The translations under genes were made by a program, and so were the position numbers. The notes beneath the pieces were generated by a model, which was not told where the DNA came from, did no database searches, and saw nothing but the letters and a program-made list of their open reading frames with translations. 64,000 nucleotides of DNA from Amphiscolops sp. MND2022 (taxonomy: Eukaryota), in assembly GCA_964187785.1 (NCBI GenBank), contig OZ076412.1, positions 23,126,001 to 23,190,000 on the forward strand, written 5' to 3'. The first letter of the stretch is position 1; each line of letters starts with the position of its first letter. Shown in pieces: positions 2,315 through 38,600 of this stretch.

Positions 2315-3313
2315 TTACACTTGCGATAAGCAAGTGTTGTGGGTGAGTGCGGGTGCTTTTTTTCCGCACGACAACTCTCGTTTCAGCCTGCAAGTCGCGC
2401 ACAGTTCAGGCGCTCGTGTTCTAGTAGTAAGATGTTTTGCTTTTCAACCCAGAGTGTTCGTGTTCGAACTCGTGCGTATACGCTAATTTTTTTACAACTG
2501 TCGAAGCAGAAGGTTTTCACTTTATTCGGAACTATGAGACTCCCCCCCTTTCGGCTTTGTGAGACTTTTTTCGAAAATTTTTTAATGTCCCCAAAGGGTC
2601 CTCCCTTCAATTTTTTGATATTTTGCAACAGAACCAATATTAAAAAATCCCAAAGGGTTCCTTTCAGATTTTTCGGCACTGTGAGACTGTTAAACATTCT
2701 CATTTTTTCGAAAATTTTTCCAAGTCTTCAAAGGGTCCTCCTTCAAATTTTTTTGAAGTTTTGCAAAAGAATGCATGTTAAAAAATCTCAAAGATCCCCC
2801 TTTATAGTTTCAGGCATTGTAAGATTTTTCAAAATGAATAGTTTTTGTCTTAAAATTTGGTTTCCTCAGGCCCAGCACGCTATATCCGATTTTTGTTTGT
2901 TTTCAAAGACCGGCGTTTTTTATGCGACTTTTTTTCTAATTTGTTTTCATCGAAGCCCCCCTCATTTTACTGGAAACGAAACGTTTTGCGAGCATGAAGG
3001 ATTGCTCAAGGCTTTCGTGCACTATGCGACTTACCCGAGACCTTCTTCAAAAAAATCTGTCAATCAATTTTCTGGTTTTTTTTGAGTTTTCGGTTGAGAA
3101 AGATGGGTTTTCTGCTGTTTCCAGTTGGGGAAGAATGGTTCTCGAGACTTATGCGTATCCCTTCGGGTATTTTTTGACGCTGTAAAATTGATGAAATTTT
3201 AATGTCATTTTACCCTTGGTGCGCGTATGATAGATATTGCTTATTTGGTTTTCTTCAAAAGTTCGCAACTTTCTTCGCAAGTGTTTGCGAAGCACGGCTT
3301 CGCCTCTGTGTAT
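2315..3313 (+). mobile_element. Non-autonomous Helentron/HINE-like element, terminal family B
   Basis: 5' TT-ACACTTGCGATAAGCAAGTGT hairpin; 3' subterminal inverted copy CGCAAGTGT, then hairpin GCGAAGC-ACG-GCTTCGC and CTCTGTGT. Nearly colinear with 5076-5920 and 36564-37573. Confidence 0.72.
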
Positions 3314-4176
3314 TAATGTTTGGAACATTTCTTTTTCCTGCTAATTAATGACTAGCTTCTGTTCTTAATTTAGATTCTGAAAGTGGTTCTTCAATATGTT
3401 ACGAGTAGCAGTATTATATACAAACTTGTTTTAATGATGTTTTTTGAAGGTTGTCAGTTTTTGAAAACTTTGTAAATTTATCAGCTGTTCCAAACTTCAT
3501 TACCAAACAGTTGGTTCCATTCTTTCATCACAGGACTGGACTGTATTTGATACGGAAACTGTGAGAAGCGGGCAGTGAAAACGACATCATCGTCAGCCAA
3601 ATTTTCGGTAACATACCGAACTTCTTCGGGATGCCCCTCTAGTCGCCTATACACTTATTCAAATTCAGCTCAATGGTCTCTTCTAGTTCCAACACTGTTG
3701 GTTCAACATGAACCGCTCTCATTTCCCGACTGAACATAACTGATTGAAGGCGGAGACCGGCGGGACCGGATAGATCCCTCAACTATAAGCAATGGAAGAT
3801 TTTTTAATGACTGGGGAATGTTTTTGATTACTCAAAAGAATTATTTTGAGAACATTCTTGGACAAATACCGAACAACCAATGATGTACATAACTGTCGTA
3901 CAAGGAAGTAATGCTGATTGAAATTATCTGAATCCGCCAAACATACTTTTGGTATCGAGCAATAGCGCTATGAACCCTTCTGGTTCAAATCAGGCCAGCA
4001 ATATTTTACCGGCGCGCAACCAAAAGGTTCAAAAACCAAACACCAACCAAATAACACAATTTTTCTTATCTCCGTTTGCTCCGCTCTGCTGTTGATAATA
4101 AGCGATACATGCGGCTTGTTTTTTAAATGGACGTGCTAAAATTGTCATTTGGTGTTCAATTTTAAAAACAAACTTA

Positions 4177-4979
4177 CAGTAGAGTGCGGCTATAACGGAC
4201 CCCCTCGGGAAAACAAAAAAGTTCGTTATTCGCGCACTTCGTTATTGCCGCATTTCGTTATAGGGCAATTTCGGAGCAATCTAAAGCTCAAATGTTCGTT
4301 ATAAAAACATTTCGTTCGGGAATGCCTTAAATATATCGAAGATAACTTAACCGTACCAAAGTTAACCAAGAAAATCGTTACTAGATTACACAAGACATAG
4401 GCTTAATAATAGGTAAGACAATAAGCACAATGGTACATTAAATCCGACATTAGTTAAGTATCCATTAAACTGCAATTTTAACGAAAATAGTCTGTTATCT
4501 CGGTCTGCTTTTTCTCGATTCGTTCCATGTCCTCATCATATTCAGTACCCTCATAATGGAAATATGAGCGGAGTGTCACCAATGCCTCCAAACAATTGAT
4601 AAGTGACGGCTTAGGTACCGGCTCAGGGTCTTCAACTATAAACTCATCGTCGCTTACAACTTGATTTTCAGACTGGTTGTTTTTCTGCTGAATGGCCAAG
4701 TTACATTGTTGACACAAGGTCTTGCTACACTTGACGCTGAGCTAACGTATCACACGCTGACAATAACCATGAATGAAGAGACTCAATTTCGTTATATGCA
4801 CACATTTTTCTCGCTTGGGTGATTATCATTGGTTCGGTATACACACATTTCGTTATAGCTGCATTCGTTATAGCCGTGATTTTTTGCATGTAAAACATAG
4901 GAAAAAATTCGGGGAGTTAAAATTTGTTCGTTATAAGCACATTTCGTTATAGCCCGTTCGTTATACCCGCACTCTACGG
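4177..4979 (-). mobile_element. pogo/Tigger deletion derivative
   Basis: TIRs CAGTAGAGTGCGGCTATAACG / CGTTATACCCGCACTCTACGG, TA on both sides, many TTCGTTATA subterminal motifs. Internal minus-strand ORF (4478-4717) ends KKQTEITDYFR, a PIP-box-like pogo C-terminus. Confidence 0.85.
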
Positions 4980-5075
4980 TATCAGATATGGCAGGAAAAT
5001 AAACCCGTTTTGATAACTTCCCAAAGCAGGAACAAAAGCAATATTATCGCCAAACGTAGTTTTCCAGTTGAGATT

Positions 5076-5920
5076 TTACACTTGCGATAAGCAAGTGTTA
5101 TGGGAAAGTGCGGGTGCTTTTTTTCCGCGCGACAACTCTCGTTTCAGCCTGCAAGTCGCGCACAGTTCAGGCGCTCGTGGTCTAGTGGTAAGATGCTCGC
5201 TTTTCAACCCAGAGGTTTCGTGTTCGAACCCGTGGGTATGCGCTAATTTTTTTACAAGTATTCCGAAGCAGAAGGTTCTGACTTTTTTCGGCACTATAAG
5301 ACTTTTCGGCTTTGTGAGACTTTTTTTCGAAATTTTTTAATGTCCCCAAAGAGTCCTCCCTTCAATTTTTTGATATCTTGCAACAGAACGAATGTTATAA
5401 AATCCTAAAGGGTCCCTTTTTCACATTTTTCGGCACTATGCGACTTAGCGGAAACTTCAAAAAAATTCGAAAGAGTTCGGAAATTTTTTTCTCTATTTTT
5501 AGTTTTAAAAGACCGTTTTTTTAAAGACCGATCTTTTTTCTATGCGACTTTTTTAAAATTTGTTTTCACCGAAGCCCCTGCTCAATTTTTACAAGAAACG
5601 AAACGTTTTGCGAGAGGACTCCTCAAGGCTTTGCGACTTACCGGAGACCATCAAAAATGTTTTCGAAAATATTTGATTTTTTTTTCTTCTATTTTCTGTT
5701 TAAGGTTTTCCGCCGTTGAGAAAGAATGGGTTTTTTGCTGTTTTCAGTTGGGGAAGAATGGTTTTCGAGGCTTACGCGTATCCGTTCGGGTATTTTTTGG
5801 CGCTGTAAAATTGATGAAATTTTAATCTCCTTTTACCCTTGGTTTTCCGTATGATATTGCTTATTTGGTTTTCTTCAAAAGTTCGCAAGTGTTTGCGAAG
5901 CACGGCTTCGCCTCTGTGTT
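5076..5920 (+). mobile_element. HINE-like family B copy
   Basis: Same 5' ACACTTGCGATAAGCAAGTGT and 3' CGCAAGTGTTTGCGAAGCACGGCTTCGCCTCTGTGTT termini; tRNA-like segment at 5171-5243. Confidence 0.72.
5171..5243 (+). other. tRNA-Glu-like Pol III head inside HINE family B (second copy ~2410-2482)
   Basis: A-box-like TGGTCTAGTGG, D-stem GTCT/AGAT, TTTTCAACCCAG anticodon region, B-box-like TGTTCGAACCC; the acceptor stem does not pair. Confidence 0.6.
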
Positions 5921-6340
5921 GAATTAATGGCAAAATGGAGAAAAACGACCATTTGTTCAATGCTGATTGTTGCAATTGTTTCTATTGCCTATATGCAAAG
6001 AAAGAAACTGATATTTGCTCATTTGTTTGATGATATTTGTTTATTTTAAAAAGTTTTCGATTCGAAAATAGTTCTGCTGAAAAAATATTGATTAATGGGT
6101 ACAATGGGAACGCTTCTCATTCAGTTGAATGAATCGAACTGGCGCCAACTAAGCATGGCGACAGGCGCTGGAATGCTTTTCGTACAGAACTATTATAGCA
6201 GCAAACATCGGGAAAATTGTTCAAAACTTGCATAAAACTTCAAAAGTAGATAGCATTTTGACTTTTATCATTTTAGGTTTTCAGAATTTTTTTGCTCCTA
6301 AACTACTTTTTTGACGTTTGAAATGCATGGAAGGAACTAG

Positions 6341-6869
6341 TTTTTAGTCGGCGTTTTCGAAGAAAATCCCGACTCTTCCAGTGGCTAGCTTTTTCGTCAG
6401 TTCAACGCGAAACGTCCACTTTTTGTGCATTAATGCACATTTACCAACTTTTACCATATGTACTTAGTACTTCATTTTCAACGCATCCAAAGCCTCTAAC
6501 ATGAGATAAAAAGCCATTCCAAAGCAGAAGGGTCCACTTTTTTCGACACTATGAGACTTTCCTCCTTTTTTCGGCACTGTGAGACTGATTTTTGTCCGAA
6601 ATTTTTTTTATTGTTCCTCCCATCAATTTTTGATATTTTGCAACAGAATGGATGTTCAAAAAATCCCAAAGCGTCCCCCTTTTACATTTTTCGGCACTAT
6701 GCGACTTACCGGAAACTTCAAAAAGATTTCGAAAAAAAATTCGGAATTTTTTTTCTCAATTTTTAGTTTCTTGAGAGCTTTTGTCTCCAGTTGTAGAAAA
6801 AGTGGTTTTCGTTTTCAAGTCTTTTTGAGCCTTAGGTATGGCGCCGACTTGGGCCGTTCCCGGCTTGTT
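6341..6869 (+). mobile_element. HINE-like family A copy
   Basis: TTTTTAGTCGGCG... to ...GGCGCCGACTTGGGCCGTTCCCGGCTTGTT. Closely similar to 40384-40852. Confidence 0.72.
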
Positions 6870-7117
6870 GATTATAGCATCAGAGTATCATAATTAGTTT
6901 CAAAGGGGGGCTCCTTGAGACTCGTGAAACGCTTTTCTCTTACTGAAAACCCAATAGTTTTTCAATCGAAAACTGATTGATGGAATTTCAAAAAAATGAG
7001 AACTTGAGTTGAAATTTCAGTTTTACGTAAAAGGAAATTTTAAATGATAATTTGTACACTTTATAAGCATTTTATAGTGGTACGAAGTTGCATAACCAAG
7101 TTTTTCCGAATTGTTAA

Positions 7118-7618
7118 TTTTTAGTCGGCGCTTTTATAAATAAAAGAGCCCGACTATTACAGTCACTCGTTTTTTTTCTTTAAGACAGACTCGAAGCGAC
7201 GAACGTTAAAATTAACGTTCAACTACTAAATACAGTACTAAACTACTGGACCCTGGACCGGCAAAGGCAAACGGGGAGCGCATTTAGGATAGTGCAAAGG
7301 GTCCCCCCTTTCAGTTACTCCATTTTTATCGTAAGATACAAAACAGGACGAGACTATAGGGTTTGAGTTTTTTTCGGCACTGTGCGACTTTTTTTCGAAT
7401 TTTTTTGTCTCCAAAGGGTCCCTCATGTTTTTTGATATTTTACAGCAAATTGAAGTTTCAAAAAGCCCAAAGGGTCTCCCCTTTCAAGTTTTTTGGCACT
7501 GAGACTGGCTCAAAATTCTTATTTTTCGATTTTTCTTTTTTTTTCAAAAAACCCTTTTACAATTTCAAAAAGTTTGAGCCTTAGATATGGCGCCGACTTG
7601 AGACGTTCCCGTCTTGTT
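7118..7618 (+). mobile_element. HINE-like family A copy
   Basis: TTTTTAGTCGGCGC 5' end; GGCGCCGACTTGAGACGTTCCCGTCTTGTT 3' end, a hairpin variant (GACG-TTCC-CGTC). Confidence 0.7.
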
Positions 7619-8412
7619 TAATATTTCTGCTTTAGTAGGAATGTTATTGAAATCTCAAAATGTCTACTTTTTTTCAGTACAATTCTTGGCACGATACTGA
7701 ATAATTCAGATATTTTGTTTCGGCAGTGACTATAAACGTAAGAATTAAGTTTCTCAAGCTGCCGACGACAATTCAATTCTCGTGCGATGGAACGAGCGAG
7801 TGGTAATTATGCATTCGTATGCCGACGTCATTGAGATGAAGCGAATGAAGGTTAATCATTCGTTCGTTGAGAGCTTCGCCTGCATTCAAATGCGAATGCG
7901 AAACTTCGTCTTCGCTTAGTAGTTATACACATTTTCTTTAGTCCGAGAAGAATTAAAGGCGGTGTAAACTTGTACAGTGATTAATTGTGCGCTGAATAAT
8001 TATTAAACAGGAGTGTATTGGTATTCCAGATATGATTCTGTTAATTAATGAAAGATTAAAGCAGAAATAGTACCGAGCCCCGGAGGGGCTTATTTTCGAA
8101 ATGCAGGCATTATTTGAATGAAATTTGAGACTACATTTTAGGGAAAAATTCCCATAAAAACATGGGAAACTGGAAGGGACAGGTGTGAGACTTTCAATCA
8201 TCAGAATTTCGTGAAAAATGATTCAAATGTCATTAACCTGACTCATAGAAGCATATCTGAAAGTGAATCTGGTTAGAGGTTACTTCAATGTTCCATTTTC
8301 GGCCATAACATCGGATGCAGCTTCGCGAGGACTATTGAAAGTTTTTTGTTCCGAATTTTTTTGTAACGTTTAGCTGACAAATAAGTGAAAATGATTGTCA
8401 ATTTTCAGATTA

Positions 8413-8602: not shown

Positions 8603-11600
8603 GTGAGTTTTAGGAATCATCATAGCATAAACCGTTCTCATATACAGTCAAACTCGGATAAAAGAAACTTATTGGGCGGTGAGAAAAGGGTTTCTTTTAT
8701 CCATAATTTCTTATATCAGTTGTCCTATTAACGTAGAAAGTTTGACTTGCATAAAATCAGAGGAGTGAAAACGTTTCTTATATACGAATGTTTCTTTTAT
8801 CGGTGTTTCTTTTATCCGTGTTTCTTTTATCCGAGTTCGACTGTATTCATACCAGTATAGAACTCTAGTGCGTGATTACAACCGGGGGTCAAAATTCGAA
8901 GGGCGTCTCTTGGCTGCACCGAATTTCTCAGAAGTCATCAAAGGGGGTGATCAGAAACAACTTAAACTCAGACGGAAAACAGAATCAGTTATTTGCTTTT
9001 TTTGTTTTATTGGAATGAAGATGTCTCGAACATCTGAATTTCTTGTCTTGAAGGCCTAACAATTATCTAATTTAAGGCATTACCATTCAATCCTTGGTTA
9101 GGTTTTTGAAAGTTGTGTCTGTTTTTCTATAGCTCGTGTGGATTTCGTAGTAGGCACTCCCGGTAATTCAGACATTCAGTGCGGTTTAAATAGTCACTAG
9201 AGATTTCCTTTTGGGCTACTTGGAGTTGAAACCATCGTAAAACGTCATGTAACCAAAGAGGGTAAATATTCCGTGGAAAAATGACGAGTAGGTAAACCAG
9301 TTTTCTTGCACTCGATGCTGAACCAAAATAATAGAGCGCAGTTTCGCTGAAGAGAAGGCAAGCGCCCACCATGAATCAGTATTACGTTGTAAATTTTTCG
9401 AAACAGGTGTTCGACAATTAACTATTGGAAATTCGTTAACCTTCACATTTGAACCATTTTCGACGCTAAATAGTTCTTCAGTAATAATCAACTTTTCAGC
9501 AGTATTCAAACGCTCAATAGCTTTGAAGGATTGGTCGGTAGATTCAATAAGAGGCGTTAACTTGGGTATCAACATGCTGAATGACAAGTTTTTGTGACCG
9601 AAGCTTCTTGAACATTTTCAAATGTGCATTTTAAAAATTGATGTTGGCCTCCTTTCGGGTTGAAACCATTCTTCCACTTTCACGCTGTTCAAAATTTGAG
9701 GAGTTTAACGATATGATTGTAGTTTACAAAATATTTAATCAAATCGTCGAAAAATTTGTTGAAAAGTTTATTGGGAAGCTGATATCTTTCAGCAATCAGA
9801 AGGGAGGATGGCATGCAGTGGGAAAGGAGAGCACCCTTGGCCCCCAAGCAGGTGCGACAACTGATCAGAGATGGGTACAACGTGCTCGTACAGCCTTCAA
9901 ACAGAAGAGCGTTCACTCACAGGGCTAGTCATTTCAGTTACACGTTGCTTGATTGACCATGTTATCCTTCATGTAACACGCTACAAAGCAGTGAAAACAT
10001 TGTATTGATCTTTCTTACGTAAAAAGTAGTGCACAGGTATTGGTTGAATGAAAATTGCAATTTTATTGCAATTTTCTCTTTTTAGTCGGCGTTTTTTGAC
10101 ATTTGACACCAACTTTGACAACTTTTTTTAATGTCACCAAAGGGTCCCCCTTCAAGTTTGTTGATATTTTGCAACTAACTGGATTTTCAATAAGTCTAAA
10201 GGGCCCCTCATTTTACAATTTTTGCCATTGTTGATTTTTCAAACTGAATATTTTCCGTCTTAAAATTTTGATAAAATTTTAACAGTAGTGTCCTTTTGCA
10301 TATTTAAAAGACTTAACTCTTTTGAATCTTGAACGGGGGCACCGACTTGGCCCGTTTCCGGTTTGTTATTTTCCGCCCACATTTAATGGGGGAGGAAAAT
10401 CATAATCTGTGTTGCGTTTTTTTCCAAATTCTGCAAAATGTCTAGCAGACACGAGGTCGTGGGTTCGAACCCGTGCTGATGCGTTACATTTTTGGCGGAA
10501 AATATCCCGGAGCTTAGCGGGTGTCTTGTTTAATAATAATACTCTTCTTTAAATCCAACTTCTCGAAACCCACGCGCTACGAAACGAAGTTTCTTAGCAA
10601 TGAGTGATGTTTGCCCAATATTTAACGAGAGGGCCAGTCTAAAAATTAGGGCTCGAAGTGTCGTCACGCTGCAGAGCCTCGTTGTAGTGTCAATAACGGT
10701 TGAGTAAACTTAAATGAGAAACAGCGAGTGGAGGACCTATTTAAAAAATGAAACACCGAAAAGCAATAAAATCACAACGGATTGATGGTCAAGATGAGCG
10801 CCAATATTGTTTGGCATAAATCACGACAGCCTTACCGCATGTACAGTAGCCGCAATAGATGTCGATTTCTATCTGACGATGAGTTTTTCGGCATCCTCTG
10901 AGGCACGGCACAAAGCATGGAATTAAAGCGAAGCTGGTTTTTGTCCTAATGTAGCTGGTAGTGTTGGGATAAATATCTTGTCCTTTCTCCGAGATGTTAA
11001 GTGCTAGCAGGTTCCCAGGTCACCAGTATAATCGACGACTAATGAGTTCGAAGTGCTGTGTACAAAATCAAGGATTTTCCACCAGGATTTTGATGGAACT
11101 TGTATACCTCTTTTATGACTCTGACATGAAGCTGCGCGTGGATTGAAATTTTTTTTATCGGAAAATGTCCTGCAATAGCGACATTCACACTGTCCACTGA
11201 CTTTGATGCCGAGACGAGCTTCGTCTTGAGCGCATGTTGTTTTGTGATGGAAGGACTGTGATCACCTTCCAATACTAAAGCTCTTGCCGACGATCTCTGC
11301 CTGCTTCTTGAAACGTTACTTAAAGTCAGGCTTTCTCAACTGTTGAAAGGTACTCTTTCGGAGTCCATGGAGTATGAATGAATTCCAAATGGAAAATCAA
11401 GTTTATACTACAAGCTTTCGGTGACATTGTGTTACTTTTGTGTTGTCTTCGGAATTACCTGCAGTATCATTCACGGCGCCCCATGTGTCACCTACCGCGT
11501 CGTATTCAGCGTATACCTAGAAAGCAGTAATACTCCACAAGATTCACGTTTTCAAGTTACAGTGTGTTGTAAAATGTTTACGCTCTGAAATTGATACATT

Positions 11601-14600
11601 GAAAAACAATAATGCGATAGCATTATATCAGATTTTTGCCTCTGTCAAAGCAACGATTTTATGCCGCACAGAAATATCGGCTTGTTTTCGCATGTTTCGA
11701 CATTAGAATGGAAGAATGTCTGAAAATTGGAATGGAAGGAAGTGTGAAAAAATTAATGAACAGATTTTCGTTTGAGAGTGGAAACATTTCACAACACACT
11801 GTAATTCAAAGCCCCTGTATAAACCAGGTGTATTGTCTACTGTGCAGTTTTTGGTGATTTCGCAAAAATCAAGAACGATTCCTCTTTATCACATTAATTT
11901 TCCCCAAATGAGCCGACTGCAATGCTTCATCTTCGATGATGATAATCACTTTTAATTGAATATTGATCTCGTTTGCAACCCCGAATTCCACCCAATCTCT
12001 TACTTTTCCTCGTTTTAGGAATACGAACTAGCTGGAGCCACTATTGAAGAAGATATCAGATCTGCGGCTCTCGTCGTGGGAGTGAAACAGGTGCCGATTG
12101 AGAAGCTGATCGCCAACAGAACTTACATTTTCTTCAGTCACACAATCAAGGCCCAGGAAGCTAATATGCCAATGTTGGACGAGATGCTACAGAAAGTTCG
12201 TTCTCACTATTTTTCTGCTGCAAAGCCTCAAATGGCGATTTTGAAACTTTTGAGTTGTCTCTGACACGTTTCCCAATGGTATCGGTGTCGTGATCGTTTT
12301 TTTGAAAAGGTTGAATATACAAAAATACTGCAGTCGTTTGTGTAAAAGTTGGGGCTTTGTATTTGACAGCAAGAATGGGTGACTTTGGCGATCCTGGCTC
12401 AAAGATTTACCGCAACTTTTTACTTGTTGTTACTTGAGGTTATCTAGAGTGAAAACCTATGAAAATTAGAACCTCAGTTTGCTGTTTAAATAAAAATTCC
12501 GCCAAATGTTGTTGAGAAGTTCTATCTATAATGTTGCATGTGTTTCAGAACATTCGCCTTGTAGACTACGAGTGTATGTCTTCCAATGGGAAACGAGTGA
12601 TCGCATTTGGCAAGTGGGCAGGTGTTGCTGGTATGATTGACGTTTTACATGGGGTGGGCCTGAGACTTCTTGCTCTAGGTCATCACACGCCTTTCCTGCA
12701 CATTGGGCTGGCCCATAGCTACAGAAATAGTGAATTTGCCAAACAGGTCAGCAGAAAAATTAGTGAACATTTATCATTTTGACACTTCTTGGGGGTTTGT
12801 GAAAGTTATTGATTGACAATACGCTTTCGTTAGAAAACGCAGACTATGGTTGTAGCCTTCTAAAGACCAGCGAACTGACGGATTTCGATAATGTTCTTTT
12901 ACTTCTTCATTTCGTTTCCATGTGTGCTGCTTTTTGCACATGACGAAGTCAATGTGCATTGCAGTCCAGCTAAGTAAGTTTTTTTCCACAATAGTCAACT
13001 TCATAATGAGCGCCTTTTAGAAAAGAGCCAAAACCCCAGAGAGATTCGAACCTGTAGCCTCCCGCTTGCACGGCATAAGTGTTGACCACTGTGCCATAAC
13101 CACGTTATTGAACAAAGTTGAACTGTTGAATATATACGCATGCGATTAAAATAATATAAATACGCATATTAAAATAATGTCTTCGTCATGTGTTGCGAAG
13201 CACCGCTTCGCCTCTGTGTTGATATTTTTCGTCCACTGGTGTCTCCTGTTGTTTTTTGGCACTATGCGACTTTTTCATACATCAAATATTTTCTGAGAAT
13301 TCTTTTCGAAATTTTGGGTTTGATGTTTCGAGTTTTGGAAAAGCTGTTTTCGGGTCTCAAGGGTCCCCTTCTGGTATTTTTCGGCTTTGTAAAATTGATT
13401 TAAAAAAGTTTCACAAAAGTTGTCTTTTCGCATAAATAAAGCACTTTGCTTTTTTTAAAACTTGCGCGGGACGCCGACTTGGGCCCTTCTCGGCTTTTAT
13501 TCAAGATGGCTGTTGCGAAAAAATTATGAATTGATAAATGAAAGTGTTTGTGGACCTTGAAAACCCCTGATGCTGCTGCGATGCATGTTTCAAACAGTAT
13601 TGAAGAAGTCTCCGTAGTTCTACAAAACTGAAAATTAAATAGGCTGCTTTTTCGTCAAATAATTGGATTCGGAATCAAAGAAAATGTAGCCCACAAAATT
13701 TTGGCTTTATATTTAAACATTGGTGCGATCTGATGGAAGAATAAACTTTTTTTGTAAAAACTCACAGTGCCAAAAATCCCCTGATCATACGGGATCCTTT
13801 TGGTCTCGTTCACCTTTGCGGTATTGAAAAAAAACTTTATCCATCCCGTGATTCTAACCCATGTCACCGCCACTACTTACAGTTTGCGTTTTTTCCTAAC
13901 GAAATCGGCGACTAAAAACAGCGACCAGCCTCATTATCGTTTGAAGTTGATTTTAACTCAATTTTCGTCGTAAAACTTTTTTTAAAAAAATTCAGCGCTT
14001 AGCTCATGGCTTGCGAAAAATACTCGTTTGACACCAAATAATCTGAGGACATAAATCATCTGCATCGCAACATAGTTCATTAAAAAACTCAATTGGCTAA
14101 AATCTCATTTGATCGATGATAGCTAGATAAAAGTAGTTCCACAAGAGGGCCACCACAAGTGCACCATGAAAAGTACTGTTTCATTATGCAAGTATATCGA
14201 ATAGTTTCGGAGATATTAATGGCCTTCTGACTGGAAATGGGAGTCTAAGCTCAGCCTACCTGAATTTTCACATAACAAAGAATATCATGGAGCTTGCTTT
14301 GGTTCAATGTTATGTTTAGCACTAGAACATGAACCTCTGCCTCAGACATCTTTCAGAAATTTTACTGCATCACAAATACTCTCGGAGACATAAGGCTTAG
14401 ATATCCAAATATGGTAAAATTTAGCATGTGAATGAACATTTTTGTCCTAAGTAACAACTTTAGCGAGATAAAAGTAGTTGAAAAGTAGGTGAAAGTAACC
14501 TACGAAAATGCTGAAAAAGTGCACTATAAAAGTGTTCACCTATTACGCCAGTACCTTGAATTATGTTGGACATATTAGTGGCCAATTGGTGGGAAATGCG

Positions 14601-26600: not shown

Positions 26601-29600
26601 TTTCATTGCAGGCTTTGTGGTATGTATTCAGTCACCGTAACTGTCGACTGGTATCAATGTTCTGAAACATATATACTCAGTGTCTGTTGTCAATGTCTAA
26701 TTTTGTTGAACACACTACAAATATTGTCTGTCTCCATTCTCGCGGTTTCAGATTCAGTAGAAAAAAATGTAGCCCTCTCTTTTACATTTTACAAATTGAT
26801 ATGGTCAGTGCTTTAAGATTGACTTTACATTGACTAACAAATTTTCCTTGCCGTGGTAAAATTTAAGTATTCTGGTTGATGCCCCTATTTGCCGGAGGTG
26901 GGGTGTACTAATAGTAGAAGGCCTCATTGAGTAATTTGACATTTCGTTTTGATAAGAGGTAGATTTTAACTTGCAGGGGACGGCCCAAGTCGGCACCCCG
27001 CTAACGGTTCAAAAGAGTAAAGTTTTTCAAATGTACAAAAGGACAGTATTGTTGAATTTTTTTTACATTTTTACTGTGCCGAAAAATAACCGAAAGGATA
27101 CGCATAAGACTCGAAAACAACTTTTCCCCAACGAACCACAAAAGTCCGTCTTTCTGAAAATTATTTCCCTTCGAACATTTTTTTAAAAAGTCTCGTAGTG
27201 CCGATAATTGAACTGAAACTCGCAAAACGCTTTTTTCAAGCCGACAACATTCATGATTGTAAAGGGAGTACACTTTGACCAAGCAAAATTTTCGGAAAAA
27301 ATTCCCACAGTGCTGAAAAACACCGTAGGTATTTTTCAAAATTATTGAGAAAACTCTCATCAGTTCCGCAGCACCAAAACAATAATCAATAACGTCTCCC
27401 TTGGGACTCAGAAAACCTTAAACCTCAGAGCAGAAAACCTCAAAAAAAATTGAAAAATAAGTTCACAAAAATGTTTATATGAATAATCGATAAGTCGCAT
27501 TGTGCCGAAAAAAACCTAAGACGGCCCTCTATTTTCGCCGCTTTTTTCCTGCTAAAATCAGAAAGGGGCACTTCGTTTGAAAAAAAAACTGCTGTGAAAA
27601 AGTCACAGTACCGAAAAAGTCTAACGTTGGTTTCCCCTCTATTTTTGCAAATATAAAAAAAACTGGTTTAGTCCGAGACTCGCACCGTCGTAGTCCTGCT
27701 TTTCAGTCCCCGTCACAGGACCGGAAATCTGAGTTAATGTTTCTGTTCGCTGGTCTTGAAAGAGAAACGAAATTATATAACGCAACCTCCACCTCCTCCT
27801 TAGTAAAACGCAATATAGTTTGGATGTAACGTCAAAATTTGAATATAGCGCAATATTTTTGAACCTCTACCTCCTCTTTAGTGAATGCAAAGCACAAAAA
27901 GTTTCTGGCTGAAACAGGGACTCGAACCCGCGACCGCTTGGTTCCCAATAAACCGATTAATATCTACATCAAAAAGTGGTACATACAGAGTCTGACTAGT
28001 TTTCCTTCGTTTTAAACATACAATCCGGTCAAAGTTTCTGAAATGATCTACTTTCAGTCTATGTTCTAAACAGGACCAAAGTTTTTAAAGGTCGTTCCTT
28101 TCTTTTTTCTTCGGATTCCAATTAATTCTCTATATTTCTGGCATTGTTTTCGAAACTGGTAATGGTAATAACACTCGCTACGGATTTTTTATGTTTTTAT
28201 TTGGAAAAAAGGTCCTAAAAAAGGTTTTATAAAACTTTTTCGTCGTAAGACAACAGAATGTATGCGTAGTGGTCACTTTCTCAGCACTTCTAAACCACTG
28301 GACCGTCTAAGTTTACACAAAAAGTCTTCCCTCTTTTTTTCCATTTTAACGTAACATACAAAATCGAACGAGTCTATAGGGTCCCCTCTTTCGTTTTCGG
28401 CTCTGTGTGACTTTTTTGTCGAAAATTTAATAATGTCACCAAAGGGCCTTTTGAATTGTTTGATTTTGCAACAAATTGAATGGTAAAAAGCCTAAATGGT
28501 CCCTCTTTTACATTTACCGGCATTTTGAGACTTTTCAAAATGATCATTTTCGGCTTAAAATTAGGTTTTCTCAGTGGCCCAGCACGCTATATCCGAAGTT
28601 TTGACGTTATATTCGAAGTATATTGCGTTTAACTAAGGAGAAAGCGGAGGTTCGAAAATTTTGCGCTAGATCCGAATTTTGTTTTAAGACTCGTTTTTCG
28701 GTACTATGCTACTTTTTTGTAGTTGTTTTCATCGACGCCCCCCCTCGATTTTTACTAGGAAGAAAGCGTTTTGCGAGCATAGAGGACTCCTTAGGATTTT
28801 CGGCACTATGCGACTTACCGGAGACATTTTTGGAAAAAAAATTCGATTTTTTTGCAATCTTTTGTTTCTTTAGAGGTTTTCGGTTGAGCAAAACTTTTCC
28901 CAGTTTTAAGGGTAACCTGTGATTATTTTTAGTCCTGTCGGACTGATGAGTGTTTTCGCAACAATTGTGCAAAAGACCTTCGGCTTTTTTTCGGCACTTT
29001 GTGACTTTTCGAAACAGTTGTCTTTCGGTAAAATGGTGCCCTCATTCACTTTTTACAAAGTTTTTGGCTTGAAAAAAAACGTTTTGCGACTTCTCTGGAC
29101 TCCTCTGGGTTTTCGGTACTGCGAGACTTTTTCCGAAGAAAAAAATCTATTTTTTCCCAAAAAGTGGGTTTTTGTTGTTTCCAGTTTGAGAAAAAGCGGT
29201 TTTCGAGTCTTTTGCCTATCCCATCGGGTAGTTTTTGGCACTGTAAAATTGAATAAATTTAGCAATAATCCTGAGCATATCTCTAACTTGGCGCTTTTTG
29301 AACCTTACGTATAGCGCCTACTTTAGACGTTCCCGCTTGTTAGTTTCCATGAACCTATTGTTTTAGAAATTTGTGACTGATTTTCTCCAACTAGTTTTCT
29401 TATCAATACATAAATAAATTCTCCGATTTGTTTGTTATTAATTGATCTTTTGAGTGATGTTTCTTAGTATGAAATTTTAATCTGTAAATTGCCAAATTTT
29501 TCATTTCATGTGACCTTGAAGGCCCATCTGAGAACAATTAAATGTTTTCGCCCGACTAACAGCAGTTTTTTTGCATGTGTTTGCGAAGCTAGGCTTCGCC

Positions 29601-32600
29601 TCTGTGTCTAACTATCTTATCAGTTAAGTTACATACATTTCATTGATATGACTACATCGAATGCAAAATATCCCAAAAGTTTTCACTTTTGTTCTTATGT
29701 AGAAGATTAGTTCTTTCATCAAACAAATTATATCACGAGATTTGGATGCCCCCTGTGTAAACTGTTAACACTTCTTTTTTAGGATTCAAATTTTAGGACT
29801 GTTTCGAGAAATCTGCAGGAAATTGAAAATGTACCTCAGCAAATTTTCAGTGACTTTTTATCCCAAAAAATTATATGGAATTGACAGTTTTACATTTTGA
29901 ATTTTTGCCAATGTAGAGAAATATTAATGAGCCTCAAAGCGGCCGATTTTCTTTGTGACATCAAGGCAAGCGCTGATACGAGTATTAGTTTTCACCTTTT
30001 ACCGTCAGAAGCTACGCGAGACCGACCACCTTCGGCAAATAAGTCACCTTAGGTTATTGTCTGAGATCCTCGTGAAGTTTTGTCTCTGTATGAAATTGTT
30101 CCGTAGTCCACGGTGACTTGTTGTCTCACCTTAGACCGTCGCAACCTTAAGCTATGCCTTGTATAAACTCTGTGGGTTATAGTGACAAATAAAAACAAGA
30201 CAATGCTTCTCTCTCCGAGCGCCCTTTCTTTAATGTTGGCATTCCTTGATAGAACATTAACTTTTCCTCTGGAGGTGTTGGCGAGAAAAACTTCACGAAA
30301 ACAGTTTAGCTGAGGTTGGAAGAATTTTTATCAAGAGATTGTATTCAAAAACGCAACTTTTTTTCAGTTCTGCAACTGATACAGGTGAAGTAAGTAGGTA
30401 TATAATCTGTGTTTAATATCGGTGTATACTCTGGTTGAAGTTGAAGAATTATTGGTACTAAAATTTATGCTAATTGTCCCAAACATAGCTCATTGAAAAA
30501 TTGCTTTTGCATTTGCTTGAAAAAGTTGGTGCAATAATGTTTTGTTTCTGCGGAAATGAATGAAACTGAAGAAATATTAAAAACAATCTGTGCACCTTCA
30601 TTACACACAAATCGCAGTCCGCTCATAGTTGAATAAGAGTCGGGATTTTCTTCGAAAACGCCGACTAAAAATCGTTAAGTCCTTCAACATGCAGAAAAGC
30701 TGTTTTTGAGAAAATTCACAAGATCTCCTGTTACTGATTAAAAAATCCGAAGGCTTTTGGTAATAGAAAATATTGAGAAAGGTGAACCTCGTTTAGAAAA
30801 ATTGTTTTCAAAAAAGGCTGATGAAAACAAAATTACTAATTTTGCTGGTAGTCGCAATAAAAACGCTCATGATAAAATGTATATCACCGATGAAGCTTTT
30901 TCTGATTATTATTTTCACTTGATCAATCACCCAGTTCTTCACTTGATCAATCACCCAGTTCTTCACTTGATCAATCACACTTTCCCGAAAAGAAACCTCC
31001 TGTGTCTGAGAGAATCTGGGCACAAATCTTATCACATATCGAAAACTCTGGCAATATCTGGCATGAAGACTCCTATTTGGCTTTTGACGATGTGAAATGT
31101 TTTGTTTTCAGGCCGTGATTTGCTCGAATGGGAAGTTGACAAAGCCTTACGAGTATATAGCCACGCTTCGTCAACACAAACAGTGAGTTCACGCATACTT
31201 CGATACAACTAAAAAGATTACAGATTGTCCAGTTGAAAAAAGCCGGAGAAAAAGTTGCTTTTTTGCTATATCCTTCGATAATCTTCGCGGCATAGCATCG
31301 ACTGATTTCGCTTATTCAAAATCCATGCCCTCGTCATCTTTATATCATTTAATGGAATATCTTCAAGAAGCCTTTCAAGTTATAAACCGCATACGTAGTG
31401 GCTAAATGTACTTGGGTAACTTCTGAAATGATAATGCCCACATAGCTTGAAAGTCTAACTTCATTTGGCCCCAAAAAAGTTCAGAAAGTTACTAACCCAT
31501 GTTGTTCAATTATATGAACATTTCCCCATTTGAGGTGAATAAAAGCTCTGGAAAAAACGGGTTCTCAATTCAACATGTTTCAGAAATTTTTAAGTTGATT
31601 AGAGATGCAGTCCTAGTTTTTTGCTTTACTGCATTTATAACTAACAGGCCAACTTCAATTTATGGTATTTGTACAATTAACTTCTAGTTATATTCAACGG
31701 TTAATTATTCCACTTTAATGTTACAGATTGAAGCAGTTAGTAGCTATTCTTAAACTCCTCCCAAAGCGCACTTCTAAAATTACTTTCTGATTCCAATACC
31801 AAGTTTTTTTACTAAACGTCTTTCTCTAATACTACAGACACAGGTGATTCAGCGAGATACCAACAATCTCAAAACAATAAACTTTGACTCCAAAAATGCC
31901 ATAGACGTTTGAATACCCTGTGTATTCCACACCTTTCTGCTTTAATTAATATCCTTCTATGAAACTTTTCGTAGCGCAATTGTTTTGAAACTGCTAGTTA
32001 TCAAAAATTGAAATTACACTAAGGTACCAAAAACTAAAGACACTCGATTTTTATTATTTCTGCGATAGCAGGAATAATATTAACCCTCTTCTGCATTTTG
32101 TTACCTAAATGTAACAAAGCCGCGGATCTATTTTCAGCCACGCACACAACAATTCATCTTACAAACATTGCGTCATCATCACATGTGAATAAATTCCGAG
32201 CTGTGAAGCTGCAATCTGATTGGTTCCGAAATCCAAAAAATCAACAGAGTAGACATTTATGTGTATGTAGCCTAAATGTAACATTGTGCAAAGTTGCATA
32301 TTTCTTAATTCTACCGGCAGTGTGTACACAAAAAAAAACGAAAAAATGATACTTATCTCTGCTTGACATCCAGCAAAAACTGTTTTACGGACTTTCATAC
32401 GAAATAATTTGTAAACTCTCGTTTTCAGATGCGAAAAGTGCAAATTTTGGTCGAAATGAAATAAATGTGATTCACACTGTTTTCGTTTACCAGTATAGTG
32501 TTACATTTAGGTAACATACTGAAAATCTATATTGAGATTTCTAGTCTGAAAAAACTTCATAACCATATGAGAAAATGGTCTACCACCTGCTAGTTGAAAG

Positions 32601-35600
32601 GGTCAAATAATTTTTTTTCGATGGTTTTCAATATTCATGCAGAAGAGGGTTAAATCTCAACAATTCAACTTTTTTAGTTCAATTTTTGTCGTGATTTTGA
32701 GTACAGTACTGTGATTAAGAAAACGTCCCCCGGGCGATTTCAGGCTCGATTTTCTCAAAATCGGTCGAGAATTTTGAAAAACATCAGATATAAAACTTTC
32801 TTAGAATTTCATGTAGTTTACATTAGTGTTTTTTAAATTTTTCTGGGATTAAAATTGAGAAAGTCACAAATAGCTGATTTTGAGCAAATTTAGGACTTTT
32901 TGCCGTTTTTCCGATTTTTGACCGCTTTATCCACACTTGTTTTGGCAAGTTTTATGCTCAATTAACTTCCACAAATCTACTGAATTAATTGATGTATTTT
33001 GATTTCAAAATAGATCAACCGTTTCCAAATTATCAGGCTCAAAATGTAAAATTTCCTAAATTTACGTGAATTTCATTTGATGCGCCAATCAGAATTGAAA
33101 GTGAGACCAAATAAACAATTTTGATTGGTTGAGAACGTCATAGGAGGACGATTTCTTAATTACAGTACTGTACTTGCTGAAAAATTTATGCAATTTATTC
33201 GGCAGTGAGTGGTAAGCGTGAGATTTAAATTTAAAGCTTCCCGACAACAATTCGTTTCTTGTGCGATGGAACGAGCGAGTTGTAATTATGCATCCGTACG
33301 CCGAATTCATTGAGATAAAGCGGCGGTGTGAACTGGTAGATTGATTAACTGTGCGCTATATAAATGATTAAGATATGCTTCTATTATTGAACATGAAAGC
33401 CTAAAAGCAGAAATAATACTGTCACGGAGCGGCCTATTTTAGAAGATCAATATCTTTGAATTTATTATTTCACAAGAATAGTCTCAAGAATGAAAATCTT
33501 GCAAATTTCGATCAGAATTACAACAGTTTTTTTAAATTTCCTAGTCGGATCAAATTTTTATTAATGTAGCAGAAACTATTTTAAGGAGTTTTTAGAATTT
33601 TTCGAACTTTATTGGGCAATGCCTCAAAAACTGGTTAGAAAAAACCGTTTTCTATCTTTTTGTAGCCTTGGCACCGTCCTTAAATTTTCATATTTAACAC
33701 TTCTGAAAATTTTTTCTTGAAAAATGGATGTCGAAAAACCTATATTTTCTTTAAAACAATAATTCGGATTATGTGATCATTTTGCTGTGCAAATTCTTAA
33801 GGAGGTCATTTTCAGAAAACATCTCAATGTCAAAAGTTAGACATCCGAATCAAAGGTACAAAGTTTCTTTCAGGCATTTTTTTGCTCCGAACAGCAGTTC
33901 TCAAGATATTGCATGATAAATTTCACAAAAATGATAAAAGTTGAAAAGAAGCTAAGTGATGTAACTTTTGTAGTTTCTGTTCGATTTCAAAACAAATTAT
34001 ACCGCTGTAATTCTGATTGAAATGTTGTGGAAAACTTTTCACCTGGAACTTTTGTGTCAATTGAATATGTGATTTTTTATTGCTGTTTGATATTTTTTGT
34101 GAGTGAAGCTAAGTTTCACGAAGTTCATCTACGGATCTCATTACTTTTCAGCAAGGGCGGATTTGAAGGGGTTGCGGGAAGGGCTTGAGACCCCCCCCAT
34201 TCAAATGGAACTAATTTGAATAACAAGATGATGAAAAATAATGCCATGGCGAGGTTTTTCTCAGGAATTCATCTTGACACTTCGACTACTGAAGTCCTAT
34301 TTGAGAAGCAGGATGGGCCAAGAAAACCTTACAACTATGGCATTAATTGACGTGCATAAAAACGTTGAAATAGCTAGATTTGGCGTGAAAAATAGAAGAC
34401 TTGATTTCTGAATTCATGTTTCTAAAGTGTTGCCAAAGGACCCTGTAAAATTTTTTTGAGTCCGCCATTGGTTTTCAGGGTTGGCCAATATAAAACATGG
34501 GTGTTTTAAAACACGTTTTAAAAGTTTTTACACTTTTCTTTTGAATGAAATGCAATCCAATCAAAGATTATTTTTATTTCATGTAAATGAAATCAATGCA
34601 GACAGGCAAGTAAGTGTCAAAATGAGTAATTTTATAAAATATCAAGTGAATATGAAAGCCTATCCTGAATAATTGCTGGAATTGGTACTCGGAATGGTAA
34701 GAGGTATTAATACCAGAGGTCGAAAGACCAGAGGTCATAAAACCACAGAGTCAAATTACCAGACGGTCAAAATACCAGTTAGAATCGAACGATTGCTTAA
34801 TTTGAGGGCGATGTTTGAATACGCGTCTTGAAATTGACTAGCGTCTTGACTTCAATTAGATTTGCTTGCAAACTTTCTTTAAAGGTTGCCGCTTTTGAAA
34901 CAAAAGTACCAGTTGCATTAGTGATGTCAATTAGACTGTTGTTCGAAAGCGTCCTTTTACACACTAATCAACAATAATTAAGTGTAAACAATGATCTAAA
35001 ACTGAAGCTAAAAATTTAAGGTTGAACTGTCAATCAACCTTCTTTTAATTTGTGGAAATGATAATTGTTCAGCACTAAAATTCTGGTATTTTTGTTGCTT
35101 GTTATAAATTACATTTGAGTTGAATTAGTTCGAATTGATTTTAGCACTAAAATGATTTCAATGCTTTCAGAATCGAAAGTGTTGCAATAATTTTTTATGA
35201 CATGTGATGAAAGGGACCATTCACTAGTTTGTGCTTATCGAGTCGTTGACAATAGTTGCACTAATTAAATAATTAGAAATGAATAATCGATCTCCAAATG
35301 AGTCTTTTTTACGGTATTAGAAAGAAATACTTCGTGGTACATAACTTGGTTTCCTAATCCTCTGGTATTTTGACCGTCTGGTAATTTGACTCTGTGGTTT
35401 TATGATCTATGGTCTTTCGACCTCTGGTATTTTGACTTGCGGTATTTTGACCTGACACCACTCGAAATGGTATGTCTAATGCCTGGTACCGGAGAAATTA
35501 GAAAGATTTTCTCAACAATGGGATTCATCCACTCTGATCTTCGCAACAGCATTGGAGTTCAGAAAGTTAAAAAATATTTTAGTGATGCAATTTTTGAATG

Positions 35601-38600
35601 GTATTGAATAAATTCATTCTTTCAATTTTGTTTTTTTTTTCTCTTAAAACATCTAATTGCCAACGCTGTTAGTTTTGAGAATAAAATCGATTTTTAGTCG
35701 GCGCTTCATGAAGTGAAACGCGACTATTATAGTGACTCTTTTTTTTTCTATCCACACGAACTGACCAAAATAGTTCTTAAAAGTTCTACAAAATATTATG
35801 GTGTCAAATAGCACCATTTGGCCTAGCGAACTGGACCAAAATGGTTTTACCTGTTTTTCCGCGTAACATATCATACCGGGCGAGACCAAAGAGTCCCCCC
35901 TTTCAATTTTTTTCGGCACTGCGAGACATTTTTTTCGGATTTTTTTTCGAAATTTTTTTCCTCAGAGGGTCCCCCTGCATTTTTTTTGATGTTTTGCGAC
36001 AGAATGGATGTTGGAAAATCCCAAAAAGTTCCTTTCAGTTTTTTTCGGCATTGCGAGATTTTCTCCCGAAAAGAAAAAAATTTTTTTTTCTTCATTTTTT
36101 TCATGTTTTGCGACAGAATGGATGTTGAAAAACCTCAAAGGGTCCCCCTTTTCAGTTTTTCGGCATTGTGAGACTTTAGCGCGCCAGGGGCTCGCGCTAG
36201 CGGGCCCCGGCGCGCCATTCGGTCCATTTTTTAGTATGTAATTTTTTCAAAAAAAATTTTTCGAAAAATTTTCGATTTTCGACTACTGTAAACGAATACT
36301 TGACACTTGGAAGTCTTTTTGCTATTTTTGAGCCTTGGATATGGCGCCGACTTGGGCCGGTCCCGGCTTGTTAGAGTTTCTTTTTGGTATCCTGGTGTAT
36401 ATGGATTTTAATAGTTTCTTTTGGAGTGATCGATTTGTGCCTCGAGAAATGTGGAGGTCTCAAGTCGTAATGACCATCGAAGTTATTGCATAAGGTGGAA
36501 TATTTTTTGGAAAATTTCTGGGTAACCAGGATAATTATAGTAACGCCGCCAAATAAACTTTTATTACACTTGCGATAAGCAAGTGTTATGGGAAAGTGTG
36601 GGTGCTTTTTTTTTCTGCGCGACAACTCTCTCGTTTCAGACCGCAAGTCGCATAGTCTGATTTTGTGGCCGTGCAAGTCGCAACTTCTGGCACTTGACAT
36701 AGAGGTTAATTAGGATTTTTTGAGCTCTGCCAAGCAGAAGGACGTGGGTTCGAGTCTCGCCCTTGACCAAAATTTTTTGTGCATGTTATTTCGGGTTTTT
36801 GACTTTTTTTCGCAATTTTTTTTCATGTCACCAATGATTCCTCCCTTCATTTTTTTGGTATTTTGCAACAGAACGAATGTTAAAAAAACCCAAAGGGTCC
36901 CTTCTTTGAGATTTTTCAGCACTATGAGACTGTTGAAAATTCTCATTTTTTGTTTTGTCAAAATTTTTCGAGTCTCGCTTCAATTTTTTGAGATTTTGCA
37001 ACAGAATGGATGTTTAAAAAATCTCAAAGTGCCCCCCTTTTACAGTTTTCGGCATTGTGAGATTTTTTAATTCGAATAATTTTTGTCTTAAAATTAGGTT
37101 TTCTCAGGCCCAGCACGCTATATCCGGTTTTCGTGTTTTTTAAAGACAGGTGTTTCTTCTGTGCGACTTTTTAAAAATTTGTTTTCATCGAAGCCCCCCT
37201 CAATTTTTACTAGAAACGAAACGTTTTGCGAGCATAAATCACTGCTCAAGGTTTTTGGCACTATGCGACTTGCCGGAGACCTTCATCAAAAAAATTTTCG
37301 AAAAATTTCGTATTTTTTTTCTCAATTTTCTGTTTTTTTTATAAGGTTTACGGTTGAGAAAGATGGGTTTACTGTTGTTTCCAGTTGGAGAAGAATTGTT
37401 TTCGAGATTTATGGGTATCCCTTCGGGATTTTTTGGCGCTGTAAAATTGATGAAATTTTAACAATAATGTCCTTTTACCCTTGGATCTCCGTATGATATT
37501 GCTTATTTGGGTTTCTTCAAAAGTTCGCAACTTTCTTCGCAAGTGTTTGCGAAGCATGGCTTCACCTCTGTGTCAAAATATTGTTACCGGTTGCTCTACT
37601 CAACTAATTAATCGTTCGCTGAGAGCTTTTGAGGAGATGAATGCAATTGTTGATTCAACTTTTTCCAGTCCATATTCTATTGTCAATTAACACGATTACC
37701 AGAAATTTCGTCGTCAGAAATTTTGTCGTCGGTAATAACGTTCTATAAAACTCGCATTGTAGCGTATCTATTAGGAACCGTCTTTCATCATTGAGTCTAC
37801 TCATCTCAATAATTTTCGTCAATTGTGCAATAAGCGCTATCATTGACTACGTTTATGGTTTTGAGAGAAAAGTTTCCCAAACAAAATATAGCTACTGGAA
37901 AGGAAATGAGTTTTTTAACATAGGTTAACATTACTTCTACGTCCATTCAAATCTTTTGTGCAACCCCTAGTTGAAACTGCAGGAACTTTTTACATGCTGC
38001 AGGCCTGCATGCAGGGTAATGTTTTATAAAACTTGGAAAAATTCAGTGAACTTCGGGTGGTAAATCATGTACGAATACGCTACATTTTCCACTAGTGCAA
38101 TTAAATTTGAAAATAAATTCTTTCACATTATCGGCACGATCGCCTTGTGTTCACAATTTGTTTCCTCAACTACTCATCTGATATGATCACCGCTTCTCAA
38201 ATAGCGCGCTGAACATGACGCTAATTTGCAGTTTATTACGCGACTGAAGTTATTTTGCATTAAATTAGCGGTAAAATAGATAGCAACTTATTTGCTTTTA
38301 AAATTATAACTGCTGCTTGAAACCTGCAAAATTTCAAGGCTTTACATTGCCGCCAAAACTTTGATGAATCTTTCAAGCAGCTTGATAAAAGTTGAATACA
38401 ATAGGGAAATTTTTTCGCATTACGGTTTCCGTAAGAGCTTTAGAATATCATAAAAATTTCTGGCAGCATGCAAAAAGTTCAAGCAGTTTCAACAAGGGAG
38501 TTTTGAACATTTTTTTGGAACTTGGCTTGTAAAATAGTTCAGGTCTAAAAATATGCCGTTGCTCAATAAGCGTCGTGATGCGTTGAGTGAATGCATTTAA

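Follow-up and report, generated by a model that had tools for sequence, protein, structure and literature searches.

How can a family of transposable elements share most of its interior with elements of another family and yet carry unrelated ends? The question is raised by a 64,000-nt stretch of the genome of Amphiscolops sp. MND2022 (contig OZ076412.1, positions 23,126,001 to 23,190,000; G000:C4:23126001-23190000), hereafter the window, in which three copies of a non-coding repeat of about 1 kb, family B, lie among elements of a second system, A. A prediction made from the letters of the window alone held that two sets of ends, A and B, had exchanged one interior and had given rise to a novel, combinatorial element family. 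Here we show that family B is a three-part chimera, the largest part of which comes from the A system, and argue that it probably arose by a single capture, in the direction opposite to that predicted.

Family B in the window and in the genome

The searches covered the 1.07-Gb genome (1,929 contigs), and the control for each genome-wide motif count was the reversed pattern of the same motif. The window itself contains no N and has a G+C content of 36-41%. Family B, for which a consensus of 1,032 bp was built from 19 full-length copies, is represented there by the following features.

2315-3313, plus strand: family B copy 1, full length, 999 bp, 87% identical to the B consensus
5076-5920, plus strand: family B copy 2, shortened to 845 bp by an internal deletion, with a decayed tRNA-like piece at 5171-5238
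36564-37573, plus strand: family B copy 3, 1,010 bp, of a subfamily whose tRNA-derived piece, at about positions 90-225, is a different one
2317-2337, likewise 5078-5098 and 36566-36586, plus strand: B 5' terminal hairpin, including the 5' subterminal inverted repeat ACACTTGCG(A)
3276-3311, likewise 5884-5919 and 37538-37573, plus strand: B 3' end, made up of the subterminal repeat CGCAAGTGT, the hairpin GCGAAGC-N3-GCTTCGC and the tail CTCTGTGT
2503-3226, with matches at about 5265-5849 and 36732-37485, plus strand: B interior collinear with A-ended elements, consensus positions about 181-955, breakpoints approximate

A motif scan of the window placed the B 5' motif ACACTTGCGATAAGCAAGTGT at 2317, 5078 and 36566, and the 3' motif, consisting of the hairpin followed by the tail, at 3287, 5895, 37549, 13195 and 29583, all on the plus strand. 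The two subterminal inverted repeats, ACACTTGCGA and TCGCAAGTGT, are complementary over 10 bp, and the 3' hairpin, which B has in common with the small family D described below, sits 8 nt from the terminus. Genome-wide, the 21-mer of the B 5' end, counted with at most one mismatch, has 2,057 sites versus 0 in the reversed control, and the B-type 3' hairpin with its tail has 4,401 sites, again versus 0. The copy at 36564 has at least 40 full-length relatives at 88-93% identity, and the median identity of B copies to their own consensus is 93.7%. Thus, as had been predicted, B is a real family with ends of its own, comprising roughly 2,000 copies of about 1 kb each.

Family B has no coding capacity: no open frame is common to its copies, and blastx comparison with Rep/helicase (RepHel) open reading frames (ORFs) returned no match. 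A frame of 248 amino acids in copy 1 was considered as a gene and rejected, being a low-complexity reading of T-rich DNA that copies 2 and 3 do not conserve. The dinucleotide before the B 5' motif was TT at all 35 sites compared, with A at position -3 in 23 of them, and no target duplication was seen among 22 pairs of flanks. The tRNA-like piece inside copy 2 scored 23.5 bits over the full Rfam tRNA model at a relaxed threshold (cut-off, 29 bits). A decayed tRNA-like piece is also present at the matching place in copy 1, and copy 3 carries, at the same position, a different tRNA-derived remnant that is common to A-type elements. ARAGORN and Rfam at the gathering level found no tRNA or RNA family match in the window.

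The ends and the interior of family B have different relatives

System A is the dominant repeat of the genome, its 3' end being found at 36,119 sites versus 0 in the control, and A ends exceed B ends by about 18 to 1. In the window, the A termini (5' TTTTTAGTCGGCG; 3' GCGCCGACTT, a 14-nt hairpin and TTGTT) occur at about 10 places, nearly all on the plus strand; the motif scan revealed a strong strand bias overall, with all B and D ends and 8 of the 9 A 3' ends on the plus strand, for which gene orientation, selection within introns and an insertion bias are candidate causes. The A subterminal inverted repeats, AGTCGGCG and CGCCGACT, are complementary, and the 3' hairpin is of the type GGCCGG-TCC-CGGCC, with covarying variants such as GAGACG/CGTCT. 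Three elements of the window are central to the comparison with B.

6341-6869, plus strand: member of a young, abundant A-ended family, the first 370 bp of which are collinear with the A-ended autonomous element
28236-29341, plus strand: element X, a member of an old A-ended family, in which the A 5' core is present and the first ~50 bp are missing, with B-like modules and a decayed A 3' end
12928-13221, plus strand: family D, complete element of 294 bp, with subterminal repeats ACATGACGAAG and CTTCGTCATGT, the 3' hairpin and tail of B, and no A-like interior

Parts of the B consensus were aligned locally with the other families and scored as z against shuffled controls. Positions 1-180 yielded z of no more than 2.4 against every A 5' and 3' part, the ends of the A autonomous element (hereafter the A driver) and family D, and are unique to B. 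Positions 181-955 yielded z of 59 against 6516-6772, within the young A-ended element, and of 78 against 28370-29261, within X. Positions 956-1032 matched family D with z of 17, versus no more than 3.1 for the A parts. Global alignment of the terminal 60 bp, with z against shuffled sequence, gave values of -1.6 to 1.1 for B versus A, 7-11 for A versus A, and 6.8 for the B 3' end versus the D 3' end. The ends of B and A are therefore unrelated in sequence while following one architecture, the layout of Helentron-associated interspersed elements (HINEs), in agreement with what had been proposed.

The interior of these elements contains a unit of 115-150 bp, present 2-3 times per element and 65-87% identical between families, with the boxes TTCGGCAC, TTTTGCAACAGAATGGATGTT and AAAGGGTCCCC; the short blocks on which the sharing had been predicted are the conserved boxes of this unit. 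The sharing itself was confirmed over about 770 bp of the B interior, which is collinear with A-ended elements at 75-83% identity, and the consensus blocks 231-394, 399-592, 576-762 and 820-920 occur in the same order in X at 76-83% identity. At its 5' edge the homology begins with AAGCAGAAGG, a remnant of a tRNA-derived piece that is also found in A-type elements beside the A driver, and at its 3' edge it ends about 45 nt past the motif TGTAAAATTGA (M6). Ancestry thus changes sharply along B, with the ends and the interior tracing to different families: B is a three-part chimera in which positions 1-180 are found only in B, positions 181-955 come from the A system and positions 956-1032 match only D.

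Family D is very young, with many genome copies at 95-96% identity, and its subterminal repeats are complementary over 11 bp. Between B and D the hairpin and tail are kept and the subterminal repeat pairs differ, in a complementary manner, which suggests that recognition by the enzyme depends on the hairpin and tail, whereas the subterminal repeats need only pair with each other. The interior of D resembles an antisense tRNA-derived piece; there was no Rfam match to it, even at the relaxed threshold. Two supposed orphan B-type 3' ends in the window also belong here. The one at 13193-13221 is simply the 3' end of the complete D element, whereas the other proved genuine.

29567-29607, plus strand: true orphan B/D-type 3' end of about 45 bp, the preceding 225 bp being essentially single-copy
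13222-13499, plus strand: 5'-truncated A-ended element with the TGTAAAATTGA module beside its A 3' end, directly abutting the D element

An autonomous element with A ends

A search for two autonomous Helentrons, one for each set of ends, had been suggested. We found an A-ended one, and none with B ends in the regions examined. The A driver, about 11 kb long, is present at two loci (L039/L040, C1:34.70 Mb, and L041/L042, C10:45.14 Mb) that are 98.4% identical over 11.4 kb, and it encodes ORFs of 376 and 2,304 amino acids, the longer of which contains DUF6570, Helitron_like_N and PIF1 helicase domains. Its non-coding parts hold copies of the repeat unit, at 226 and 352 nt from the 5' end and about 130 nt before the 3' end. 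Its place in these non-coding ends, and the collinearity of the 6341 family with the beginning of the driver, mark the repeat unit as native to system A. Just upstream of the driver lie 2-3 tandem copies of a 30-55-bp segment of the 5' terminus (L039:3321-3380 and L041:3623-3790), and downstream of it a series of passengers without their first ~60 bp, each closing in an A 3' end.

The elements at 6341-6869 and 28370-29341 had been interpreted as hybrids, with B-type interiors between A-type ends. Both turned out to be members of ordinary A-system families, one young and one old. The 6341 family, a recently active one, comprises at least 40 copies with identical bounds and 95-97% identity. Element X begins at 28236 rather than 28370 and is without about 50 bp of its 5' end; copies of its family are 72-80% identical, and the aligned stretch repeatedly extends beyond the interior into the A 3' end.

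These observations bear on the possibility that each end system independently took up the same satellite or tandem repeat of the host. Satellite-like repeats are indeed known from the centre of HINEs, and unrelated repeats can occur between related flanks (PMC7492417). However, the shared segment is collinear over about 770 bp, including non-repeated modules and the tRNA-derived remnant, in the same order and orientation, and the units are found inside the autonomous A element. Tandem Repeats Finder did not report the interior units in the window, because the copies are too diverged, and it revealed no free array of the unit there. Independent capture is thus a very improbable explanation.

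Vertical descent deserves closer attention. Here, A and B would represent sister Helentron lineages that inherited the interior, with termini that diverged beyond recognition as they co-evolved with their transposases. Such descent would account for the presence of repeat units in the autonomous element's own non-coding ends, for the end grammar that the A and B systems have in common and for the position of the first unit, which in the driver, in most A passengers and in B lies at about 200-260 nt, counted from the 5' end (the second lies at about 350-360 nt). It is also in line with the coexistence of several Helentron-clade lineages in this genome (42 DUF6570 loci, with proteins 25-63% identical). 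However, similarity falls from 75-83% to the shuffled level at sharp breakpoints, whereas A-ended families at equal interior divergence keep recognizable ends (z 7-11). Furthermore, the 3' part of B is common to D, which has none of the interior, and the modules at B 545-955, common to B and the A passengers, are absent from the A driver. Finally, the B units lie inside the cloud formed by the units of A-ended HINEs, to which they are 70-80% identical, within the spread among those families, and farther from the unit of the driver, to which they are just 67-68% identical. We therefore consider vertical descent unlikely. A discrete exchange between end systems fits the data better than slow divergence, and to this extent the original prediction stands.

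Ends occur in matched pairs

If interiors and ends combined freely, mixed pairs of ends would be expected. Among 30 loci picked solely by their B 5' end, there are 26 delimited elements that close with a B 3' end, at 0.65-1.5 kb downstream of the 5' end, and the only case of a B 5' end leading to an A 3' end is a nested fragment. Conversely, an A 5' end was followed by an A 3' end in 13 elements and by a B 3' end in none. Ends thus occur as matched pairs, so that free combination is not needed and one capture event suffices; a combinatorial family, as envisaged at first, is not what these elements form.

Could the sharing simply reflect the insertion of one complete family into the other? Nested and abutting insertions are common in this genome, for example at L023, L007, 13221/13222 and 40852/40853. 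However, no inner termini are present in B, in the 6341 family or in X, and dozens of copies have identical outer bounds. The junctions themselves are recurrent: TGTAAAATTGA is followed 50-80 nt later by the A subterminal repeat at 185 sites, in many sequence variants, and 75-105 nt later by the B 3' end at 1,103 sites, with few, near-identical variants among those listed, each versus 0 in the controls. Because neither 6341-6869 nor X holds inner termini, nested insertion is excluded for these two elements, and as an account of the families examined it is refuted and retains next to no credibility.

Probable origin and direction of the exchange

The reading that we favor is one capture, in which the interior of an A passenger was taken up by the termini of a second end system (system 2), making B the chimera; judged from the sequences compared here, it is the probable course of events. 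We infer the direction of the transfer, and its single origin, from the contrast between the A-ended carriers of the modules, which are old and varied (72-80% identity), and B, which is young and uniform, from the position of the B units inside the cloud of A units, and from the abundance of A ends. The roughly 18-fold excess of these ends over B ends makes the A interior the DNA most available for capture. 

The opposite direction is that of the original prediction, according to which the interior is B's own and was taken up by the A-ended elements at 6341-6869 and 28236-29341. Two features of the 6341 family could be read in this way, as it is younger than B (95-97% identity) and shares with B a block at positions 713-799 that is absent from the A driver. 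Yet the first 370 bp of the same family are collinear with the A driver, the A-ended carriers of the modules are older and far more varied than B, and the junction of B with its 3' end is uniform, as one origin predicts. A transfer from B to A hence appears quite improbable.

Several points weigh against capture of an A interior as described above. Its direction rests on age, diversity and abundance, and not on a rooted tree. No autonomous B- or D-ended element was found, and a B driver that escaped detection could carry the interior by descent. The genome sequence read amounts to about 350 kb, and the A-ended carriers of B-like modules are known mostly as coordinates and pattern matches; X in the window is without a 5' terminus, and an intact element combining both A ends with the TGTAAAATTGA module was seen once only (L007:2248-2903). 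As for the A driver, a weak C-terminal match of its 2,304-amino-acid ORF to Exo_endo_phos reaches 20.6 bits, below the Pfam cut-off of 24.5, and this endonuclease-like part has no sequence match in PDB. For these reasons we assign the autonomous A element, by its sequence, to the Helentron/Helitron2 type only and do not call it a proven Helentron.

A possible route to the chimera

Under single capture of an A interior, all the elements considered here would be non-coding passengers of Helentron/Helitron2-type rolling-circle transposons, that is, HINEs of the DINE-1-like class. Such a passenger would be moved in trans by virtue of its termini alone, namely the 5' subterminal repeat, its complement on the 3' side and the 3' hairpin with a short tail, and the interior would be cargo. 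At least two end systems are present in the genome: A, and system 2, characterized by the GCGAAGC-N3-GCTTCGC hairpin and CTCTGTGT tail and serving both D (0.3 kb) and B (1 kb). About 770 bp from inside an A-system HINE, without either A terminus, would have come to sit between system-2 termini, and the resulting chimera would then have multiplied to about 2,000 copies. Candidate routes are end bypass or composite transposition across neighbours on the same strand, nested insertion after which the inner termini were lost, and a template switch or capture as filler DNA.

Signs of read-through are present in both systems. The A driver has been duplicated jointly with a downstream, 5'-truncated passenger and its second 3' end. 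On the system-2 side, a unit that begins with a B 5' end and finishes with a D 3' end is repeated head to tail with a period of 1,481 bp at C3:58.2 Mb (L028-L030, G000:C3:58204950-58211163); it consists of B 1-172, about 690 bp of other DNA, B 170-501 and then a D element that closes the unit with its 3' end. Same-strand A/B neighbours, an arrangement that would permit the formation of a chimera, are common in the window, where B copy 2 is followed by 6341-6869 and B copy 3 is preceded, at a distance of 190 bp, by an A-ended element in the same orientation.

35691-36372, plus strand: canonical A-ended element with three repeat units, 5' TTTTTAGTCGGCG and 3' GCGCCGACTT-hairpin-TTGTT

An arrangement of D, 456 bp and B was rejected as a read-through product: at all four loci it lies within a longer repeat (more than 3 kb, 98-99% identity) and is therefore uninformative about read-through. 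This repeat, on four contigs (L012, L014, L015 and L016), carries one D and one B copy as passengers and probably represents a segmental duplication or else a young mobile element of larger size.

A more speculative question is whether the shared unit contributed to the success of B. The unit has three conserved boxes, and the positions of its copies are kept despite the unrelated first 180 bp of B; on these grounds it could be a cis-acting module that, for instance by binding a Helentron protein or a host factor, favors mobilization and made B successful. We regard this as unlikely. If true, such a module might let B use the A machinery despite its foreign termini, which would explain the missing B driver.

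The search for a driver of family B

Ten Rep/helicase regions, representing seven protein lineages, were compared with B, and none has B ends. From the B 5' sites, 25 of 2,057 continue unlike the passenger (negative-continuation pattern), and none of the 25 is near any Rep match or any of the 42 DUF6570 loci. Four loci with no nearby 3' end (L013, L025, L026 and L007) were rejected as B drivers, being decayed or interrupted B copies. Four B-type 3' ends spaced 10.7-10.8 kb apart on one strand at G000:C12:15952629-15984901, seen as coordinates only, form a tandem set in which there is no DUF6570 hit.

A third end system, C, is found at C5:69.43 Mb (L049/L050, G000:C5:69427000-69446999), on a Helentron-clade element with a 2,047-amino-acid ORF containing Rep and PIF1. 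Its 3' end consists of a hairpin, GCGCAA...TTGCGC, followed by CTATGT(GT). The relatives of this element, which include loci at C2:23.74 Mb, C3:19.98 Mb, C8:45.21 Mb and C13:7.71 Mb, are the best candidates for the driver of B and D because the C 3' end is weakly similar to those of B and D (z of about 4, versus 1.3 for A). Abundant passengers of 1.3-1.5 kb with internal repeats of about 190 bp adjoin the L049 element. A separate clade, with very long Rep/helicase ORFs (2,376-2,603 amino acids, about 30% mutual identity; L035-L038 and L043-L046), is flanked by repeated blocks of 0.7-1 kb and has neither A nor B ends.

Other A-ended elements

Further features of the window belong to system A.

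40384-41143, plus strand: 6341-family A-ended element (40384-40852), followed at once by a 5'-truncated A-ended element (40853-41143)
7118-7618, plus strand: A-ended element with the hairpin variant GAGACG/CGTCT
10079-10367; 63288-63725; 103-680 (minus strand): further A-ended copies
15732; 17307: additional A 3' ends

In addition, the minus strand carries at 30650-30667 an isolated A-type 5' end like those of the 6341 family, with no recognizable body after it. Elsewhere in the genome, A-type 3' ends recur every ~484 bp at the start of contig 1 (G000:C1:7576-10986; coordinates only), a pattern suggestive of A passengers arrayed head to tail where a chromosome ends.

Relation to known systems

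It had been suggested that this may be the most novel system of the window, but end bypass, composite transposition and modular HINEs have already been described, and module exchange, the underlying process, is standard among rolling-circle elements, so that the system is not a new one. Rather, B provides a clean, countable case in which a successful non-autonomous Helentron-type family consists of the interior of another family and a different pair of termini. B and D together distinguish the fixed parts of an end (hairpin and tail) from those that can change while remaining complementary (subterminal repeats), pointing to what the transposase reads. For annotation the case is a warning, as clustering by interior similarity merges families that are moved by different enzymes.

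HINEs and DINE-1-like elements are defined by a 5' subterminal repeat, its complement on the 3' side, a 3' hairpin near the end, central repeats and the lack of genes (Thomas, Vadnagara & Pritham 2014, PMC4067079). Like them, the elements described here have subterminal inverted repeats (10-13 bp), a hairpin that lies within a few bases of the 3' terminus, central repeats and no coding capacity, and their insertion sites appear to be T-rich and without visible target duplication; an autonomous partner with the same ends was shown here for A. The 5' subterminal repeat of B and D is palindromic, as in mite HINEs, whereas that of A is followed by a short inverted repeat, as in DINE-1. However, families in that study are set by their subterminal repeats and their interiors are treated as deletion derivatives of the autonomous partner, whereas the B interior comes from passengers of another end system, and B and D have one hairpin and tail in common but different subterminal repeat pairs, each of them complementary.

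In the Pacific oyster, Cg_HINE elements are modular, with a left flank, central repeats and a right flank; their families are combinations of modules, and related flanks may carry unrelated repeats, each repeat cluster being tied to one flank pair, 'but not vice-versa' (Vojvoda Zeljko et al. 2020, PMC7492417). Family B represents the converse case, as related repeats, together with further modules, lie here between two unrelated pairs of ends. A search of the open-access literature found no report of related HINE repeats between unrelated end pairs, which is not proof of absence.

The closest process is known from chimeric and composite Helitrons (Feschotte & Wessler 2001; Tempel et al. 2007; Thomas et al. 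2014, PMC4224331; Helraiser, PMC4778049). In canonical Helitrons, the 3' hairpin is a terminator that can be bypassed, and composite transposition from the 5' end of one element to the 3' end of another makes chimeras (PMC4224331, PMC4778049); end bypass and composite transposition have been proposed for Helentrons and HINEs too (PMC4067079). The classification of Helitrons into families, subfamilies and exemplars already separates ends from interiors. Those elements, however, are of the Helitron1 type, with TC...CTRR ends, and usually contain fragments of host genes, whereas in B it was the interior of another rolling-circle passenger that was captured, and the two termini were exchanged together, as a complementary pair.

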